The notes under the pieces: generated by a model | What the model was told of the DNA's origin: nothing | What the model saw: only the letters and a program-made list of their open reading frames with translations | Database searches by the model: none | Translations under genes and position numbers: made by a program | Shown: one piece after another, positions 1 through 64,000 of the stretch | Numbering within the stretch: position 1 is the first letter of the stretch | Layout of the letters: every line of letters starts with the position of its first letter | Assembly: GCF_964204645.1 (NCBI RefSeq) | Contig: NC_134031.1 | Span: 13,937,807 to 14,001,806, forward strand | Reading direction: 5' to 3' | From: Tubulanus polymorphus | Lineage: Eukaryota > Animalia > Nemertea | DNA length: 64,000 nt

Positions 1-1653
1 TTGCCAAAAATGCCCCGAACCCGATCGGCTACTTCTTGGTGGAGAACCCATTCTGTCGCAATAGCCTGACCTCGACGAGACAGAGCATCGGCCATCACGT
101 TCCTTTTCCCTGCTAAATGTGCCACAGTCAGGGACACGCCCTTTGTCTGGCACCAAAGAAGAATTTTGGCCGACAGACCTGTGAGGGTTTCTGAGTGAGT
201 GCCCCCTTGGTTCTGAAGGTAAGCCCTCACTGTTGAATTGTCTGTGGCTAACCAAACGTGGTGGCCCTCCACTCTCCTGTGAAAGAACTTCAGGGCCTTC
301 CACACGGCCAGCATTTCTAGGAAATTTATGTGGTTGGTGGCCTCGTAGCGAGACCATTTCCCGGCTTTGACTCGGTTCTCCAGATGTGCCCCCCAACCTT
401 GGTGACTGGCATCCGTGAATACACGAACTGGAGCCTCTAACGGGGCTAGTGACACCCCGAGCCGAAGATTCGTAGTGGCCGCCCACCACTGAAGATCCGG
501 ACTTAGATCGGTTGGAGGTACGGGAATCAAGGCCTCCCAGTTGCCCTTCGACTGAGACCAGAAGACCTTCCAATATTGTTGCAAGCGCCTGCTTCTGAGG
601 CGGCCTAAGGGCACCACCAGACCCATGGAGCTGATGGAGCCTAGAAGCCGTGACCAGTAACGAGCTGTTCTCGGGGTTGTGGACACTCCCGCTACAGCTT
701 CTTGAAGTTTGGCCACTCGAAACCATAGACGGAAAGACTTTGGCGATTCGGAGATCGAAGTCCATGCCGAGATAAGTGAACTGTTGGGCCGGCGTCAACT
801 GAGATTTTTCCCTGTTTACGCGGAACCCTAGCTGATGGACTAAGTCCAAGACTGAGGTCATTACCTCCCGACATTCCTGAGCCGAATTCGCGACTATTAA
901 CCAGTCGTCGAGGTAAACGAACAGTCGAACACCCCTTGACTGAAGTACCTTCTGAACTGACTTGACCAACTTGGTGAAAACCCACGGGGCCGTACTGAGG
1001 CCAAATGGAAGAGACCTGAATTGGAACGGGCGGCCTTTCCACTTTATCCTGTGAAATCGCCGAGATTTTGGGTGAATTGGAACCTGAAAGTAAGCATCTT
1101 TCAGGTCCAATGAAGCCGCCCATTGACCCGGACGGAGCCCTTGAATCACGTCCTTGGGCTTGGTCATCCTGAACCTTGGAATGTCTAGGTGCCGATTGAG
1201 GGATGACAGATCTATCACTGTCCGTTGACCCCCTGTGGCCTTTGGTACCATGAATATTCGAGAAAACCAGCCGGGAGAAGTTTCGTTGCAAACTGGTTCT
1301 ATCGCTCCCTTCTCTGCCAGTTCCTTGAGAGCCGGAGAGATTAAGGCCTCCTGACCTGGTTTTGGCCGCATGTCGGGAGGTGACCTCATCAGGCGCGGTC
1401 GCCTTAGGAAACGGAGACGGTAGCCCCGAGAGACGACCCGGGAGGGCCAACCGTCTCCAAAGAGGTCGGACCAGTGGGTTGCTGCCTGCTGCAGACAACC
1501 TCCCACTGGTCCCAAGAATTCATTTCGAGTTTTTCCGAAAGGAAGAGCCCCTTTTTGGAGCCTTCCCCTTGCCTCGATACGAACCGGAACTGTTACGACC
1601 GGACGAGGCTTGACACGATTGTTGAAGTTGCGCGCTAGTTCTCCAACCGGCAT
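1..1653 (-). pseudogene. DIRS ORF2 reverse transcriptase/RNase H, partial, with a 1-nt frameshift near 720
   Basis: Manual translation: ATG at 1653, then VGGCLQ..., FQFRSLPFGLSTAPWVFTK, VYLDDWL (918-898), FTYLGM. The frame shifts near 720-724 into RVAKLQ...LQWW...FTDASHQGWGAHL...HLAGKRNVMADALSR...ATEWVL and runs off the window. Confidence 0.88.
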
Positions 1654-3775
1654 CCGAAGCCGCCTGAGAAAGCGCTGAAGTTTGAGATGGTCCTGTTTGC
1701 GTCCGTGCCGAACCTTGCGCCGCCGGCGTCGGACCAGAACGCTTTTTCCACGGAGTTCGGGGGTTGGACTTGGCCTGAACCTCCCGAATCTTCCTCAGCT
1801 CTGCGGAAACCGGAGCGCACCAACCGGAGAAGAGACGTGAAGACGTCCCCAATGGGGCTCTCAGCAAAGCATTGGACACCATATCCGGTAGACGAGTTTT
1901 GGCACTGGAGTCCATCACTGACTGACGGGAGGCTAACACCAGATTAGCCTGACCCCGAACCGACAACGGAATTACATGCGAAACAGACCGAGCCAAAGAT
2001 TGGATAATCCGGTCCATTCCCTCCAGTTTTAGGGCAACTGACTCTGGGTCGGAGCCCGCATGAACGGCGGCGTGAGTCTCGCGAAGCTCACCCGTCAACA
2101 CCTTAAGTGCCATATCTTGAAACGAACCAACCCTGGTAAGATTGTCCAGGATTGACGTCATGGCCACCAAACCGGACTTAGGCAAACGAATACCCGACTG
2201 TGCTGTAACGGTATCCGGGCTGATCAAAGTATAATCAGCATCCAGGCAGTTATGACTGTGATCCACAGCACCTGGAGTTGCGTAATACGCCGAGCGAAAT
2301 GCGCCTATAGGTGGATCGGTTGAACTAAAATATTTCCCAGATTTCATACCCCGTTCTGGAGGGGGAAATGAAAAAGTTCCAGGCCGACATTCACCCCATA
2401 ATTGCGTATCCAATCGAGCCCATTCTCTCGAAACCGCTGACGATTCCCGTAAAACGTTAAGATCGGAGTCCGGAGGGCGATAAGCTTCCATTGACTCACC
2501 GACCAGAGGAGCTGCTGTGGGCTTAGCGCGAGTTGCCCCGTGCTTGACAAAGAACTCACTTATCATCGCTCTAAATGGCATGTCCCCCGCTGGTTCGGAT
2601 AAAACTGAACGGGACGGAGATACATTGCGAGCCAGGGAAGCCCCCATCGTCTGGGGCAACCCACAATTGCTTGCGACAGGAACGACCCCAGAAGGAATTG
2701 CCGCCTCTGGGACCGGATCCTCATTGAAATCAGACCCTACCGCAGCATCCAGGAATTCAGAGTCAGAATTCCGAAAAACTGAGTGGGCTGGCGAACTTCT
2801 AACCGGACAATCAGGAATAGGCTTACCTGTTGTAGAAGTTGCAGCGACTTGTTGCGACGAAGATAACAAGTTTAAAATTTTCTCCTCAAATACATGGAAA
2901 TCCTTCATACATGGAGTCAGGTATTTTCCAGTATCCCGACGATCATGCCGACTTCGGTGACGGTCCCTCGAACGGGATCGCGACCTACTAGAAGAATCGC
3001 TTTCATCGCTAACCGACGTCGACGAACGATGAGAAGACCGACGGCGAAACTTCCGACAATAACGATCGTAGTCCCTCTCGCGATCAAACCTTGATCTGCG
3101 AGAAGGAGATCTTGCTCGTTTATTACGCTCACGGCGTCTAAATCTAGTGGGAGAGCGAGCTCTATCCCCGGAGCGACGATCAGAATCAGACGATGAACGT
3201 ACCGGATGTTTTGAACCGGACGACGTCTGGACCGGACCGGTGGCCGAACCGGACCGAACCGGACCGATGCCCGACCCGGACCGGACCGGTACCGACCGAA
3301 CCGGTGCGGGCCGTTCGCGACTACCGCGGCGCGTGCTCGGTTCCGAACATGTAGTCTGAACCGGCCGAACCGGCCGAACCGGTGAACGACCAGAGACCGG
3401 TGAATGACCGGAGACCGGTGCCGGTGAACCAGCGTTCCTCCCCGGTGAACGGAGTTGGGAAGCCGATCGTACCTGAACGACCGGCGACCGCTCCGCTTTA
3501 CGATAAGAAACAGGATTAGAAACGTCGGTTGGCACATCGGCCGAAACCGACGAATCCCTGCTAACTCGACGACGATCTCTTAGTTAAAGAGCCTTATCGG
3601 CCCGAAGCCAAAGGTCCTCGGACCACACGACGCAAATATTGCAAGGATTGCTCCTTGCACATATTTGACCGGATTTGCGCCTGCACGACGCACATGAATC
3701 GTGGTTGTCCCAGGCGCCAAACAAATGCCCGCATCCCTCCCCGCCACGATGCTGACCCTTAGGAGGGGGTGGCAT
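1520..3775 (-). pseudogene. DIRS ORF1 gag-like protein (Cys/His-rich N-terminus, RS-rich middle) with an in-frame TAA at 3584-3586
   Basis: Track ORFs 3584..3796 and 1520..3535 are in the same frame, separated by one stop (ADKAL*LRDRRR). The N-terminus reads CGH...DNHDSCASC...C...C..C. Confidence 0.8.
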
Positions 3776-57257: not shown

Positions 57258-57448
57258 ATCGCTTCTCGGCCTATTGGCTAAGATCAAAGTGTAGTATCTG
57301 TTCTTATCAGCTTAATATCTGATACGCTCCCCATAGGGAAGCTTCGATATTAAACTGATTTTTGGCACTAGGTGAAGAGTCAGGGGCTTGCTCCGCCTTC
57401 GCCACGAGTTGGCCTGGTATTGCAGTACCTCCAGGATCGGCTCACTCC
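57258..57448 (+). ncRNA. RNU2: U2 snRNA copy 12 (G>A variant at 57339)
   Basis: As copy 1 except ccatagggAagc in place of ccataggggagc. Confidence 0.97.
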
Positions 57449-58576
57449 CTCTGGGAGTTCAATATCAAATAAAGATAGTTGAGCCTAGGTCTATCCTCGC
57501 TTACCAGGTTCTGTTTGGCTCACGCCAACACGAGCTCTGTCTGTAGGCCTAAGATTTTTTTGGGTGCACGGGTGGCCGCTTAGCGGCCACCAGCGATTAG
57601 CCAATCGCACGCGTGAAAAACAACGTATCTGATTGGCTTAAATACTTATAAATCTCTGGCGATGTAATAGGCCGATGAATGGTTTGCGGCCAGGGTTTGT
57701 GTGGGCGTGAGCTTCGGCTTCAGTTCCAGAGAAGATCTAGACCATTAACAAACTGACCTTGACCTGGGCTCCGGCGTAATGTCGAAGTACATAATACGTA
57801 GAATATGCGTTGCGTAATTACGAATCAATGACGGAAGTTGAATTCCGTCGTCTGTCGTCGATTTATTCGCTTCATTGGACTGTGAGTATATATTTACCAT
57901 CCATGAATACTTTCGATCCATCAATCATCGCCCAATCGGGATCTCCGAATCAGTTGAAATACTTTCCGTCTTAAGTTTTAGCAACCAACGCTGAATTTCA
58001 CGGCAAGTCATCTTATCCGGAGGCAAAGAAATCGAAGCTAGCAACCGCATTACTGAGTAACATAGCAACTTTTTTCGGTGATATCATAGCAACCGGTGGC
58101 ATGATAAGGGTTCGAGTCCCGATTTATTGCGCTGTCATATCGGGCCACAGCGTATTCAAACCGTGTGCCTAATAAATATCGAGTATCGACCTACGTTTAT
58201 CCATATACGCGAGAAAGATTCACCCTGACTGCAAACTAGTAAAGGGCCTAGAGTTGAGTAGGCTTCGCCGAGACCGGGAAGCGCGTAGCGCAGGACCCCA
58301 AAAATAGTACCTAGATCAATGGAACCAGCCACAGGTAGGGCAGTGAAACGGTAGGCTAATTCAACAAATAGGAGAGTCGACGGAAAACTGATGTATGTGC
58401 GAAATCCGTGGATCCTGAGAGGCAAATCGATGAAAAAAATAGAGGATTCCTTGGAACTATTTTGCTTGAAGTTAGAATACGGCGCCATACCAAACGTGGC
58501 AGTTCGGGGATTCCCTGCAATATCCGTACGACACCGGGGCGGTACCAATTCAAATTCAAATCATCCCGTTCCGCCT

Positions 58577-61347
58577 GAAATACGATTTCCACGAAGTCGT
58601 GTGTGAATGTATTCGTTTAAATACAATTACAGAATCTATGAAAATTGGCGTAATCACTCTCATACACAAAAGGGGGGAAAGAACACGCTTAGGAAATTGG
58701 AGACCGATTACTTTACTTTGTACAGACTATAAGATTATAACTAAAACTATTTCAAATAGGTTAATTACTGTTTTGACAGATATTATTGATCCTGATCAAA
58801 CATGTAATGTTAAAGGTAGACGGATCCATGACAATTGTCACATAATCCGTGACCTAATCCAGTATACCAACGATGAAAATATTGAGGCCTTTCTATTAGC
58901 GATCGATCAGATGAAGGCATTTGATCGAGTAGATTGGTCATATATGTTCAAATCCCTGAAATCGTTTGGCTTCGGCGAAAATATAATCAAATACATCGAA
59001 ATGTGTTATTCTGATCCCAAGTCCTTGATTAAAAGTAATGGTTTCCTTACAAATCCATTCTCTCTTGAACGAGGAGTAAGACAAGGATGCCCAATGAGTG
59101 CGCTTCTCTATATTATTGTAGCTGAAACCTTAGCAATTAGAATAAGGCGCGATCCAGAAATTGAGGGTATCACCTTGCCAAACGGGGAAGTGTGTAAAAT
59201 GAAACAATATGCTGACGATACAACCCTAACCTTAACAAGTATTGAATCAATCAAGAAACTTTTCCATGTTTTAACGGAATTTGAGCAATCTTCTGGAGCC
59301 AAAATAAATAAAGAAAAGACGGAAGGTTTATGGATTGGTGCCTCCAAGAATAGAACGGATAAACCCCTAAACCTAAATTGGTCAAACAGACACATAAAAA
59401 TATATGGCATGTATTTTGGTCTTGGTGACATCGATAAACTTAATTGGGAACGAAAGATTAACACAATTACAAACATAATAAATCAATGGCGACAGACTAA
59501 ACTGTCGTACAAAGGCAAACGGGTAGTTATTAATTCGTTCATTTTACCTGTCTTATGGTATGTCTCAGAAATTTATCCTATACCCAATATTTACGTCGAA
59601 CGTATTCAGAAAAAAATTAACGATTTTCTTTGGTCTTATGGTAAACATTATGTAAGAGCGGAGATAATCTATCAACCCTTAAGCAGTGGTGGATTAGCAA
59701 TTAATAACATTAGTTGTAGAGTAATGGCCCAAAGGGCACGAACTATCCTAGTAGAAATGAATCGAGGATCTAAATGGAGAACATTACTGAATTATTATCT
59801 TAATCAAGTGCTAGGACAGGGCTGGTCGATAGATTCCCTTATAAATGAAAATTTCATAAATAGAGAAACTCGGAATTCATACTACAAAAGCCTTTTAACC
59901 GCGTGGAAGTATGTGATGGCTCTCGTTGAACCGAAATGGTCGAAGCACGATATTAAGAATAACTTAGTGTTTAATAACCCCTCAATAACTGTCAATGGTA
60001 GGACCTTGAATTATCCAGAATATACTGACATAGGTTTAACAAATATCAAGCATTTCTTCGATGAATATGGTAATTTCAAAGATATTGATAATTTTACGCC
60101 GATATTAGTAGACGAAGGAAAACACAGCCGAATTTACGCTGCTATACCTCGCGAATGGCGGGTCACCCTGGGTGACGAAACCATTGATGATAATAAAAAA
60201 TCAGCTTACACAATTAAAATACAGAACTATAGAAAACCATTAGCTGATACTTCGATGCGCGAAATATATAATGCCATAGTCCATGCAAAATTCGGCCACA
60301 TAAAACCAATTAGTCAAAATAAAATCCAAACAATTCTAAACGAACATAACATAAATTGGGCTCAAATATGGGGAGACATTTATCATCCAATAACTGAGAA
60401 TAAATTAGGGGATATGCAATGGAGGTTTCTACACGATACCCTAGCTACAGCAACTAAACTCGTGACATGGCAAGTTTCTAACGACCCTACCTGTAAAATA
60501 TGCGGCCGTGCAGCCACTAATACGCATGTCATAATTGAATGTCCGGCAGCTGTAAGACTTTTTACTAGATTTCAAACGATAATAGCTCAGGTAGCAGAAC
60601 AACCAGCCCTCTTAACTAAACGTACAATTTGTTTTGGTTTTTCTAAACAAGCGATCATAAATCCACACAGTAGGCGTATATGTAACTATTTGATAACGGT
60701 CTTGAAATGGACACTGTATAAGAATCATCGCAAGGCATGCGCAGGAGAAACTGAACTAGATATGAAAAATTATGCTCGTAATTTTATAGCCAAACGATTG
60801 AAACAGGAGATTACGGCCAGGAAAAATATTAATGTTTGGACTCAAAATGAAACACTGATCAGATGCAACGGAAATAATTACTTTATAAATGAAATAGCAC
60901 TCAGTACGATTAATGATATTTTGTAAGGCCAGAAAAGAGCGTTTAGGTTTCTGTAAATAGCAATTAAATCGTTTCATACATACTATACATGTGACTGTGA
61001 ATGATGACTTGATATTTCTATACTAGACAAAAGTATTCCTATTTTGTAAATATAAAGAATAATTTGTGTCATTACGGATAATGTGTAAATATTGGAAAGA
61101 ATTAAACGATGTATGTATGATGTGTAGTGAAATGTTCCAGTTAATGCAGTTTGAATTGTCTTCTTAATATACATATACGACTGTTACTAACCAGTGTTAT
61201 GAATAACGTTTAAATCGAATTGAAAAGAATTAAATATACATTTATGATTGCTTGGAATATGATGTAAATACCTCCAGTCCCCCACCTGACTCCAGTTGGT
61301 GTGATGTAGTTGTTATGGAGCCTTCCTTTTGTAAAATAAAGTTTATA

Positions 61348-61392
<45 letters not shown>
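58577..61392 (+). mobile_element. 5'-truncated L1/Tx1-clade non-LTR retrotransposon inserted in U2
   Basis: Array identity stops at 58576; RT ORF; ~425-nt 3' UTR; AATAAA at 61335-61340; poly(A)42 at 61351-61392 followed by U2-derived GATCAAAG. Confidence 0.95.
58578..60926 (+). CDS. ORF2 fragment: RT plus C-terminal CCHC zinc knuckle; APE endonuclease missing
   Basis: NWRPITLLCTDYKI, DQMKAFDRV, RGVRQGCPMS, QYADD, SGAKIN..KT and CKIC.....TH...EC motifs; uninterrupted frame from the junction. Confidence 0.93.
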   Translation, partial: KYDFHEVVCECIRLNTITESMKIGVITLIHKRGERTRLGNWRPITLLCTDYKIITKTISNRLITVLTDIIDPDQTCNVKGRRIHDNCHIIRDLIQYTNDENIEAFLLAIDQMKAFDRVDWSYMFKSLKSFGFGENIIKYIEMCYSDPKSLIKSNGFLTNPFSLERGVRQGCPMSALLYIIVAETLAIRIRRDPEIEGITLPNGEVCKMKQYADDTTLTLTSIESIKKLFHVLTEFEQSSGAKINKEKTEGLWIGASKNRTDKPLNLNWSNRHIKIYGMYFGLGDIDKLNWERKINTITNIINQWRQTKLSYKGKRVVINSFILPVLWYVSEIYPIPNIYVERIQKKINDFLWSYGKHYVRAEIIYQPLSSGGLAINNISCRVMAQRARTILVEMNRGSKWRTLLNYYLNQVLGQGWSIDSLINENFINRETRNSYYKSLLTAWKYVMALVEPKWSKHDIKNNLVFNNPSITVNGRTLNYPEYTDIGLTNIKHFFDEYGNFKDIDNFTPILVDEGKHSRIYAAIPREWRVTLGDETIDDNKKSAYTIKIQNYRKPLADTSMREIYNAIVHAKFGHIKPISQNKIQTILNEHNINWAQIWGDIYHPITENKLGDMQWRFLHDTLATATKLVTWQVSNDPTCKICGRAATNTHVIIECPAAVRLFTRFQTIIAQVAEQPALLTKRTICFGFSKQAIINPHSRRICNYLITVLKWTLYKNHRKACAGETELDMKNYARNFIAKRLKQEITARKNINVWTQNETLIRCNGNNYFINEIALSTINDIL

Positions 61393-61394
<2 letters not shown>

Positions 61395-61400
61395 TCAAAG

Positions 61401-62405
61401 CTGCCTCCTTTTTGGCTTCAGGATAGCAAGCTCAGTCTATTTGCGCGCGGTGGCGGCTGGAAAGTTGCCTCTGGACATCGGTCTCACCAAAAACTAAAAA
61501 ACCTGACTGTGACATTTGATTCAGCGCACTTGCCGCCTCGGTGACTCATCGACGGTCTTTCATTACGCATAGAACTGTCGGCCAGCTATTGAAGCGGCGC
61601 GTGTCTAAGATCAAAACTGTAAATAAAACCCAAAATAGACTGTATCAAATAATTGTATGTACAAATACTCGCGTGCCTGTGTCGCTTTCCTGTTGACGGT
61701 CTATCAATGCGCATAGCACTGTCCGTTGGGCCGCGACGCATCCACGCACCTGTCTATGCACTGTAAATAGAAACACAAAACTGCTCCCGTATGAAACTTA
61801 TACTTTCAGGCAAATTCAGCACCAGACGTGAAGTACCAACTGCGCACCCCTTGACGGAGAAACCCATCCTCATTGGAGCTGCATCTTCGGATACCAGGAC
61901 CGTACTCTCATCTGGATAATTTGCGTTCAAAATGTGCTACTTTAAACTAATCAACATGCAGGGCGGACAACATAGAGGAATTTACACCAATATTTACTCG
62001 GAAAATGCAAAAACTCTCGGATTATTTACACGCGGAAAACGACCAAAAAAATTAAAAAAAACGAACATTACCGATCTTAGCCCCTTATAGTTATTTTCAA
62101 AGTTAGATGTATTAATTAGGCTTTAAACAACATAAACTCCCATCAGTCGCTTGCCGGTTCAGGCTGGATGGATGATTGTTCCGACGAACCGGAACCGACA
62201 TTTTCAATTATGTACTTCGATTTAAAAAAAATGATGTAACCTCGACCGACGACAACTCAACTACATTTTGTACTTCGATTTCCGATTTCAAAAACAAACC
62301 CCCTGTTTCGCTCCCGGCAGGTGTGGTGGGTATGTAAGGGACGCCAAATCAAACGAAATTTAATCGCAAAAGTTTTTACAATTACCAGTCAAATAAATAA
62401 GAGAT
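61401..62405. mobile_element. Unidentified ~1-kb non-coding insertion in U2 with a 10-bp flanking duplication
   Basis: AAGATCAAAG at 61391-61400 and 62407-62416; not array sequence; no long ORF and no TIR; AATAAA just before the right junction. Confidence 0.65.
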
Positions 62406-62575
62406 TAAGATCAAAGTGTAGTATCTGTTCTTATCAGCTTAATATCTGATACGCTCCCCATAGGGGAGCTTCGATATTAAACTGATTTTTGGCACTAGGT
62501 GAAGAGTCAGGGGCTTGCTCCGCCTTCGCCACGAGTTGGCCTGGTATTGCAGTACCTCCAGGATCGGCTCACTCC
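62406..62575 (+). pseudogene. RNU2: 5'-truncated U2 (nt 22 to end), promoterless
   Basis: U2 resumes at TAAGATCAAAGTGTAG; nt 1-21 and the upstream promoter are absent. Confidence 0.95.
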
Positions 62576-64000
62576 CTCTGGGAGTTCAATATCAAATAAA
62601 GATAGTTGAGCCTAGGTCTATCCTCGCTTACCAGGTTCTGTTTGGCTCACGCCAACACGAGCTCTGTCTGTAGGCCTAAGATTTTTTTGGGTGCACGGGT
62701 GGCCGCTTAGCGGCCACCAGCGATTAGCCAATCGCACGCGTGAAAAACAACGTATCTGATTGGCTTAAATACTTATAAATCTCTGGCGATGTAATAGGCC
62801 GATGAATGGTTTGCGGCCAGGGTTTGTGTGGGCGTGAGCTTCGGCTTCAGTTCCAGAGAAGATCTAGACCATTAACAAACTGACCTTGACCTGGGCTCCG
62901 GCGTAATGTCGAAGTACATAATACGTAGAATATGCGTTGCGTAATTACGAATCAATGACGGAAGTTGAATTCCGTCGTCTGTCGTCGATTTATTCGCTTC
63001 ATTGGACTGTGAGTATATATTTACCATCCATGAATACTTTCGATCCATCAATCATCGCCCAATCGGGATCTCCGAATCAGTTGAAATACTTTCCGTCTTA
63101 AGTTTTAGCAACCAACGCTGAATTTCACGGCAAGTCATCTTATCCGGAGGCAAAGAAATCGAAGCTAGCAACCGCATTACTGAGTAACATAGCAACTTTT
63201 TTCGGTGATATCATAGCAACCGGTGGCATGATAAGGGTTCGAGTCCCGATTTATTGCGCTGTCATATCGGGCCACAGCGTATTCAAACCGTGTGCCTAAT
63301 AAATATCGAGTATCGACCTACGTTTATCCATATACGCGAGAAAGATTCACCCTGACTGCAAACTAGTAAAGGGCCTAGAGTTGAGTAGGCTTCGCCGAGA
63401 CCGGGAAGCGCGTAGCGCAGGACCCCAAAAATAGTACCTAGATCAATGGAACCAGCCACAGGTAGGGCAGTGAAACGGTAGGCTAATTCAACAAATAGGA
63501 GAGTCGACGGAAAACTGATGTATGTGCGAAATCCGTGGATCCTGAGAGGCAAATCGATGAAAAAATAGAGGATTCCTTGGAACTATTTTGCTTGAAGTTA
63601 GAATACGGCGCCATACCAAACGTGGCAGTTCGGGGATTCCCTGCAATATCCGTACGACACCGGGGCGGTACCAATTCAAATTCAAATCATCCCGTTCCGC
63701 CTTTTTCCTTTCTAGACGACTATCATTTCAAAAGTTTGGATGGGCATGTGGAGAACGAAACTCACTTCTACGTAAAGTGAAGATGTTGGCGGCGGACAGC
63801 GAACGCATCCCGCAAATTGTGCGAACCACGTGTCGTAGCCTACCGACATCGTAGCGGTTACGCTTTTGGGTTGGTTCACTGAGCGTTTCACAAGTGTTTT
63901 TATCGCGACTAAAGTGTAGGATATTATCGATATTATGAATATTCGTAGGTAGTAGCAAATTTTCCGGGCATAATGAAGTTCACAATTTATTTGCATAATT

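Follow-up and report, generated by a model that had tools for sequence, protein, structure and literature searches.

Identification of the insert

The 1-kb insert that interrupts a U2 snRNA gene near the end of the 64,000-nt stretch of DNA analysed here (the window) is the truncated tail of a protein-coding LINE, an ordinary element in itself, and not a new non-coding element. Our interpretation, to which we assign a probability of about 80%, is that it arose by retrotransposition of an autonomous Tx1/L1-type element, LINE B (subfamily B1), as a copy truncated at its 5' end, and that B1 prefers the site between nt 22 and 23 of U2 but is not confined to it. Four things that bear on this are seen directly: the two-ORF identity of the element, the geometry of the junctions, the 15-bp target-site duplication (TSD) of a full-length copy, and dispersed sister copies with TSDs of ~15 bp.

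The insert lies at 61397-62412 (+ strand) and is 99.2% identical, with 8 differences in 1016 nt, to the full-length B1 copy at G000:C7:14014660-14020860. It begins 203 nt past the ORF2 stop codon and comprises the final ~1.0 kb of a 3' UTR of 1.2 kb. A genome search with the insert gave 57 matches out of ~2000 candidates, two of them near-identical (99% and 98%) and dozens at 75-79% identity, and the longer genomic copies extend upstream into coding sequence. The earlier sequence-only reading had described the 1005 bp between the flanking repeats correctly: BLAST matches them neither to the array unit nor to the adjacent LINE (LINE A), there is no ORF of 60 aa or more (the longest is 58 aa), no terminal inverted repeats, and no poly(A) at the 3' end. 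The AATAAA that it placed ~10 nt before the right junction is at 62392-62397 (+), 8 nt from that junction, and this polyadenylation-like signal is kept across subfamilies. What does not survive is the description as an unknown non-coding element, since the insert is a LINE 3' UTR; the longer, 5'-extended coding versions whose existence that reading had raised are present, in the form of a full-length copy with both ORF1 and ORF2. A special fold at the 3' end of the insert was considered and rejected, the last 162 nt folding no better than shuffles (z +1.3).

The same reading had offered a non-coding, non-autonomous passenger moved by LINE A, an idea to which the missing ORF in the 1005 bp and the nick shared with LINE A would both lend themselves. 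It is refuted by the coding parent: over its length the insert follows the 3' UTR of the two-ORF LINE to which it belongs, it has no fixed 5' end (breaks occur at many positions), its tail is not common with that of LINE A, and LINE A is itself dispersed. We give the passenger practically no credence.

The full-length copy and family B

The contig, read beyond the window, carries a complete LINE B1 at C7:14014660-14020860, 15-21 kb downstream of the insert and in the same U2 array. Its order is U2 nt 1-37, a short leader, ORF1 (346 aa), ORF2 (1270 aa), the 1.2-kb 3' UTR ending in TAAGATC, 25 A residues, and U2 from nt 23; it is flanked by a 15-bp TSD corresponding to U2 nt 23-37. A Pfam search of ORF1 gave no hit, and ORF2 contains an APE endonuclease (Exo_endo_phos, 5.7e-13), a reverse transcriptase (RVT_1, 2.9e-36) and a zf-RVT motif (5.2e-9). 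This architecture, ORF1 followed by an ORF2 with N-terminal APE, RT and a C-terminal zinc motif, is that of the APE-type non-LTR retrotransposons of the L1/Tx1 group.

The wider family B is large and dispersed, at ~78% identity, with ~15-bp TSDs at YT/AA targets and no copies found in U2. Its members have a fixed 3' end with an A-tail, variable 5' truncation and TSDs; four dispersed copies show TSDs of 13-16 bp, and 15 bp can therefore be taken as the family norm. The endonucleases of the dispersed subfamilies are ~70% identical to that of B1, and the tail is the same. No U2 15-mer was found at the ORF1 starts of dispersed full-length copies, which are without U2-derived heads in this respect. 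LINE A, whose ORF is 48% identical to the ORF2 of LINE B, is the sister of B in the RT tree. The best database hits to B are only 32-37% identical. In this tree, built without named Tx1 references, the nearest relatives of B include elements from 5S sites and from the Keno site, on deep branches that are unsupported.

In a DNA run from an independent study under the same species label, the B1-specific parts are covered ~75-fold, against ~7-fold expected per single copy. Provided that host DNA makes up most of the run, this suggests ~10 B1 copies per genome, compared with three in the assembly over the stretch measured. The private allele of the insert at 61487 appears in 5 of 120 reads, and no RNA run was listed as containing the insert sequence. 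A 74-nt core of the UTR, at 62269-62342 (+), is 93-100% conserved in all subfamilies, and its read depth is ~50 times the B1-specific baseline (~3600-fold), equivalent to hundreds of genomic copies. This core may also occur in further LINE families or in a SINE.

The U2 array, LINE A and the junctions

The window ends in a tandem U2 snRNA array with a unit of 1804 bp, of which twelve genes, from 37417, are intact and a thirteenth is broken. The last intact gene, with 1318 nt of the 1804-bp unit, occupies 57258-58576 (+). There follows LINE A, a 5'-truncated Tx1/L1-type element at 58577-61392 (+) with RT and zf-RVT motifs, an ORF at 58599-60926 and a 3' UTR. At its 5' junction (58576/58577) 508 nt are lost, made up of the remainder of the unit, with the promoter region upstream of the gene, and U2 nt 1-22, and at its 3' end a 42-nt poly(A) (61351-61392) is joined to U2 nt 23. 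By their coordinates, none of the six closest other copies of LINE A (92-99%) is near a U2 gene or fragment. A join of poly(A) to GATCAAAG is present just twice in the genome, both times within this array. Because near-identical copies are dispersed and this join is so rare, LINE A is not U2-specific and is a visitor here rather than the driver. Near the start of the window, a GC-rich region at 692-3537 (- strand) has overlapping ORFs of 671, 268 and 206 aa without a Pfam hit; we presume a resemblance to DIRS-type retrotransposons.

The sequence AAGATCAAAG stands on both sides of the insert as had been reported, at 61391-61400 and 62407-62416. It had been interpreted as a 10-bp TSD, and the repeat is indeed present, but it is not a clean duplication, being partly the element's own sequence on either side. 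On the left, 61391-61400 (+) is the target remnant, U2 nt 23-32, whose first AA belongs equally to the LINE A poly(A). The last four letters of the remnant, AAAG (61397-61400), are found also in longer B copies and constitute a 4-nt microhomology at the 5' truncation; only GATC is uniquely U2-derived. Since the element has AAAG of its own at this point too, the repeat goes no further than nt 32. On the right, the element's 3' end, TAAGATC plus As, overlaps U2 nt 22-31 at 62406-62415 (+), and the junction has no single position within this overlap. Of 27 oriented copies with an end found, 26 terminate in TAAGATC (sometimes TAAGATA) followed by As, and this holds for all subfamilies. The insert probably lacks poly(A) because this normal family end, TAAGATC(A)n, matches U2 nt 22-31. 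The remnant of the broken U2 gene, nt 22-193, runs from 62406 to 62577 (+) and is followed by normal array units. The geometry supports a TPRT nick at nt 22/23, with U2 resuming at nt 22, at the position used by the adjacent LINE.

These junctions can be accommodated in a scheme of retrotransposition. The APE endonuclease would nick the bottom strand at U2 GGCT/AAGATC, and the RNA 3' end (UAAGAUC plus As) would pair over ~9 nt with the freed primer; reverse transcription would then begin inside the terminus, leaving no poly(A). The cDNA would halt after ~1 kb, and its joining at the 4-nt AAAG would make the duplication 10 bp long instead of 15. Probably LINE A entered later, at the regenerated upstream nick, deleting 508 nt. 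Alternatively, B may have inserted here at full length and only later have lost its 5' 5.2 kb, through a deletion between two AAAG motifs that left the insert behind. The 4-nt microhomology fits both routes, and a duplication 5 nt below the family norm is in keeping with deletion; 5' truncation with short microhomology is, however, the usual state of family B copies, and it is standard for APE-type LINEs. Later deletion is accordingly improbable, and we prefer truncation during retrotransposition.

Preference of B1 for the U2 site

How far does B1 favour the U2 site? B1-type 3' ends number 10 by pattern, or 12 when two BLAST hits are included. Four of these 10-12 ends are at U2 nt 22/23, all four in one locus, and the other 6-8 are outside U2, where for most copies the flanks were judged from coordinates only. 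The suggestion of a second family using the U2 site, with the insert as its 3' end, is supported as to the family and the nick at nt 22/23, but "U2-specific" was too strong: strict specificity fails, with the family mostly dispersed and even in its closest subfamily 6-8 of 10-12 ends outside U2. We conclude that B1 has a preference for U2 nt 22/23 and no strict specificity. The four copies at U2 differ in their 5' or internal breaks, in their tails (present at C7:14020860 and 14025574, absent from the window insert and at C7:14055575) and in age (99% to 84%), and for this reason they look like separate events. A second stack like that in the window, at G000:C7:14025574-14027300 (L033/L034), consists of an old B1 end, U2 nt 23-37 and the 5' end of another subfamily, whose leader is split by (ACAG)n/(AC)n repeats ~1.5 kb long.

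The dispersed subfamilies behave differently. None of 27 copies read directly, and none of 13 ends preceding AAAG, is in U2, and no U2 15-mer was found at dispersed-type 3' or 5' ends, although all share the TAAGATC end. Their targets are of the form YT/AA, reading GCT/AA, ATT/AA and GTT/AA, with GCT/AA, as at U2, at 3 of 6 readable sites. This bears on the idea that the array is a hotspot without any dedicated specificity, in which U2 GGCT/AAGATCAAA is the best generic YT/AA site, combined with tail pairing, and several unrelated LINEs accumulate in an open, multicopy array. The sequences of the dispersed targets speak for it, as do LINE A, elsewhere dispersed, at the same nick, and an unrelated LINE, that of contig WLWI01021116.1, also at this nick. 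Yet the far commoner dispersed subfamilies share both the tail and the YT/AA target and none was found in U2, against 4 of 10-12 B1 ends, and we consider a mere hotspot rather unlikely, if not greatly so.

What, then, might distinguish B1, as an element with a preference of its own? One copy is informative here. It is a mosaic (G000:C53:1-4985, L037) that lies outside U2, with RT and UTR 95-100% identical to B1 and an endonuclease of the dispersed type (68% aa identity to B1) in its N-terminal half, the identity climbing gradually from 70% to 100%. Both array copies that retain an endonuclease carry the B1 type (100% and 82%). These three copies, compared at the level of sequence, point to endonuclease type as a possible determinant of U2 choice; most likely, the U2 preference of B1 needs the B1-type endonuclease besides the shared tail match. 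A special target common to the non-U2 B1 copies was considered and rejected, since the 3' flank of the C53 copy is unique over 300 nt and then passes into an unrelated repeat. Beyond this copy, C53 7917-13022 contains a 1702-codon frame with DUF1759/DUF1758, which we take to be BEL/Pao-like.

The B1 UTR contains two further resemblances to the target, each spanning the nick. An 11-nt match to U2 nt 21-31 at 61605-61615 (+) is present in B1 and not in the dispersed subfamilies. At 62073-62082 (- strand), 10 nt match U2 nt 19-28 in antisense and are complementary to the 3' end of the element as well; this second match has its full length only in B1. Outside the terminus, two or more UTR matches to U2 nt 13-45 occurred in 0 of 3000 shuffles and in 0.7% of control windows. 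These internal matches may be due to chance, may be relics of old ends, or may pair intramolecularly with the terminus; that they act in target recognition, one for each target strand, is speculation.

Comparison with other U2-associated elements

The Keno elements of the Tx1 clade (KenoDr1, Tx1-5_BF, Tx1-1_HM) are non-LTR retrotransposons with APE and RT that reside in U2 snRNA genes (PMC4640811, PMC4494074), and Keno and Utopia have a common 3' flank from U2 nt 39, TCTGTTCTT (PMC4640811, PMC6136364). LINE B resembles Keno in being an element with APE-type endonuclease and RT in U2 genes. In contrast to Keno, with its flank at nt 39, the four B copies are at nt 22/23, 17 nt upstream, with a 15-bp duplication, and B1 is U2-bound only in part. 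Utopia, for its part, has one ORF and an RLE-type endonuclease, targets U2, stacks in tandem and includes families of relaxed specificity (PMC4640811). LINE B is similar in U2 target and tandem stacking, but its two ORFs and APE endonuclease set it apart from Utopia, with one ORF, a restriction-like endonuclease and a different site. SINEU and SINEs resemble the insert in that U2 sequence adjoins the element; they differ in that the insert has a coding parent and no RNA-derived head, an Rfam search having given no match.

An element from the Keno site is available for comparison in an ENA contig (ERZ25073780; L078), a reference defined by its junction and not a named Keno, with a full ORF2 32% identical to B and a tail whose junction with U2 lies no more than 3 nt from the Keno site. 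A clade of B with this element is rejected by the AU test (p-AU 3e-112; 22 rows, twelve long or distant rows excluded, unrooted tree). L078 itself is a 5S/U1/U2 cluster of another organism, in which three elements, each preceded by U2 nt 1-25/27, meet U2 at the Keno site or close to it, and one element lies in 5S rRNA with a ~15-17-bp duplication. Mutsu is the name given to a 5S rRNA-targeting Tx1 element (PMC3706591). Two of the best database hits to B, P0002 and P0005 (32-33% identity), are Mutsu-like in that they lie within 5S rRNA, have a poly(A) and are flanked by a ~15-17-bp duplication; their target is unlike that of B, with which they form no supported sister grouping in the RT tree.

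A metagenome scan returned one contig, WLWI01021116.1 (L072:81-3789), in which the poly(A) of an APE-RT LINE is joined to U2 nt 23. This LINE is from another organism and is 27% identical to B, and a single clade of the two is rejected by the same AU analysis (p-AU 7e-51). As a single copy found by a junction search, it shows reuse of U2 nt 22/23 and not specificity. Its relatives P0122, P0124 and P0125 have no U2 flank, two of these contigs stopping before the tail. A second, unrelated lineage may have converged on U2 nt 22/23.

Short pieces of U2 are also found elsewhere in the genome. At L068:1480-1562 (G000:C10:13801574) a fragment of ~nt 8-50 is flanked by a direct repeat of ~17-19 bp and looks like a tail-less retroposed U2 piece. 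Further short 5' fragments (nt 2-33) are present three times on C9 and also on C6.

Origin and significance of the U2 preference

Has the preference been gained by B1 or retained by it? In the papers found, no U2-targeting retrotransposons other than Keno and Utopia are named, and a retrotransposon site at U2 nt 22/23 was not found described in the literature, in which subscription journals and Repbase Reports were thinly covered. B1 could tentatively be viewed as a third, independently arisen U2-targeting lineage, at a new site (nt 22/23), that has diverged through the N-terminal half of its endonuclease, possibly aided by pairing between RNA and target. It is equally conceivable, and we hold it no more firmly, that U2 specificity is ancestral and has been relaxed in most lineages, TAAGATC being a captured piece of U2 and B1 the last lineage to target it. 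All subfamilies have this 7-mer with its As at their ends, a sequence identical to U2 nt 22-31; older copies, 84% identical and diverged, and the 5' end of a second subfamily are also at the U2 site; and relaxed U2 specificity is documented for some Utopia families (PMC4640811). Against this, the sister family A is dispersed and lacks the TAAGATC end, and where the 3' end can be read in the nearest outside relatives, it is plain poly(A) with no U2. The ancestral history is compatible with the mechanism proposed above for B1.

The part of these findings that may be new is a Tx1-like subfamily that partly prefers a U2 site, inside an otherwise dispersed family. Close relatives that favour U2 and others that do not are present in the same genome, together with a natural mosaic, and this provides a ready comparison. 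Such a comparison could show what makes a dispersed APE-type LINE site-preferring: the endonuclease, the pairing of tail and target, or transcription from the U2 promoter.
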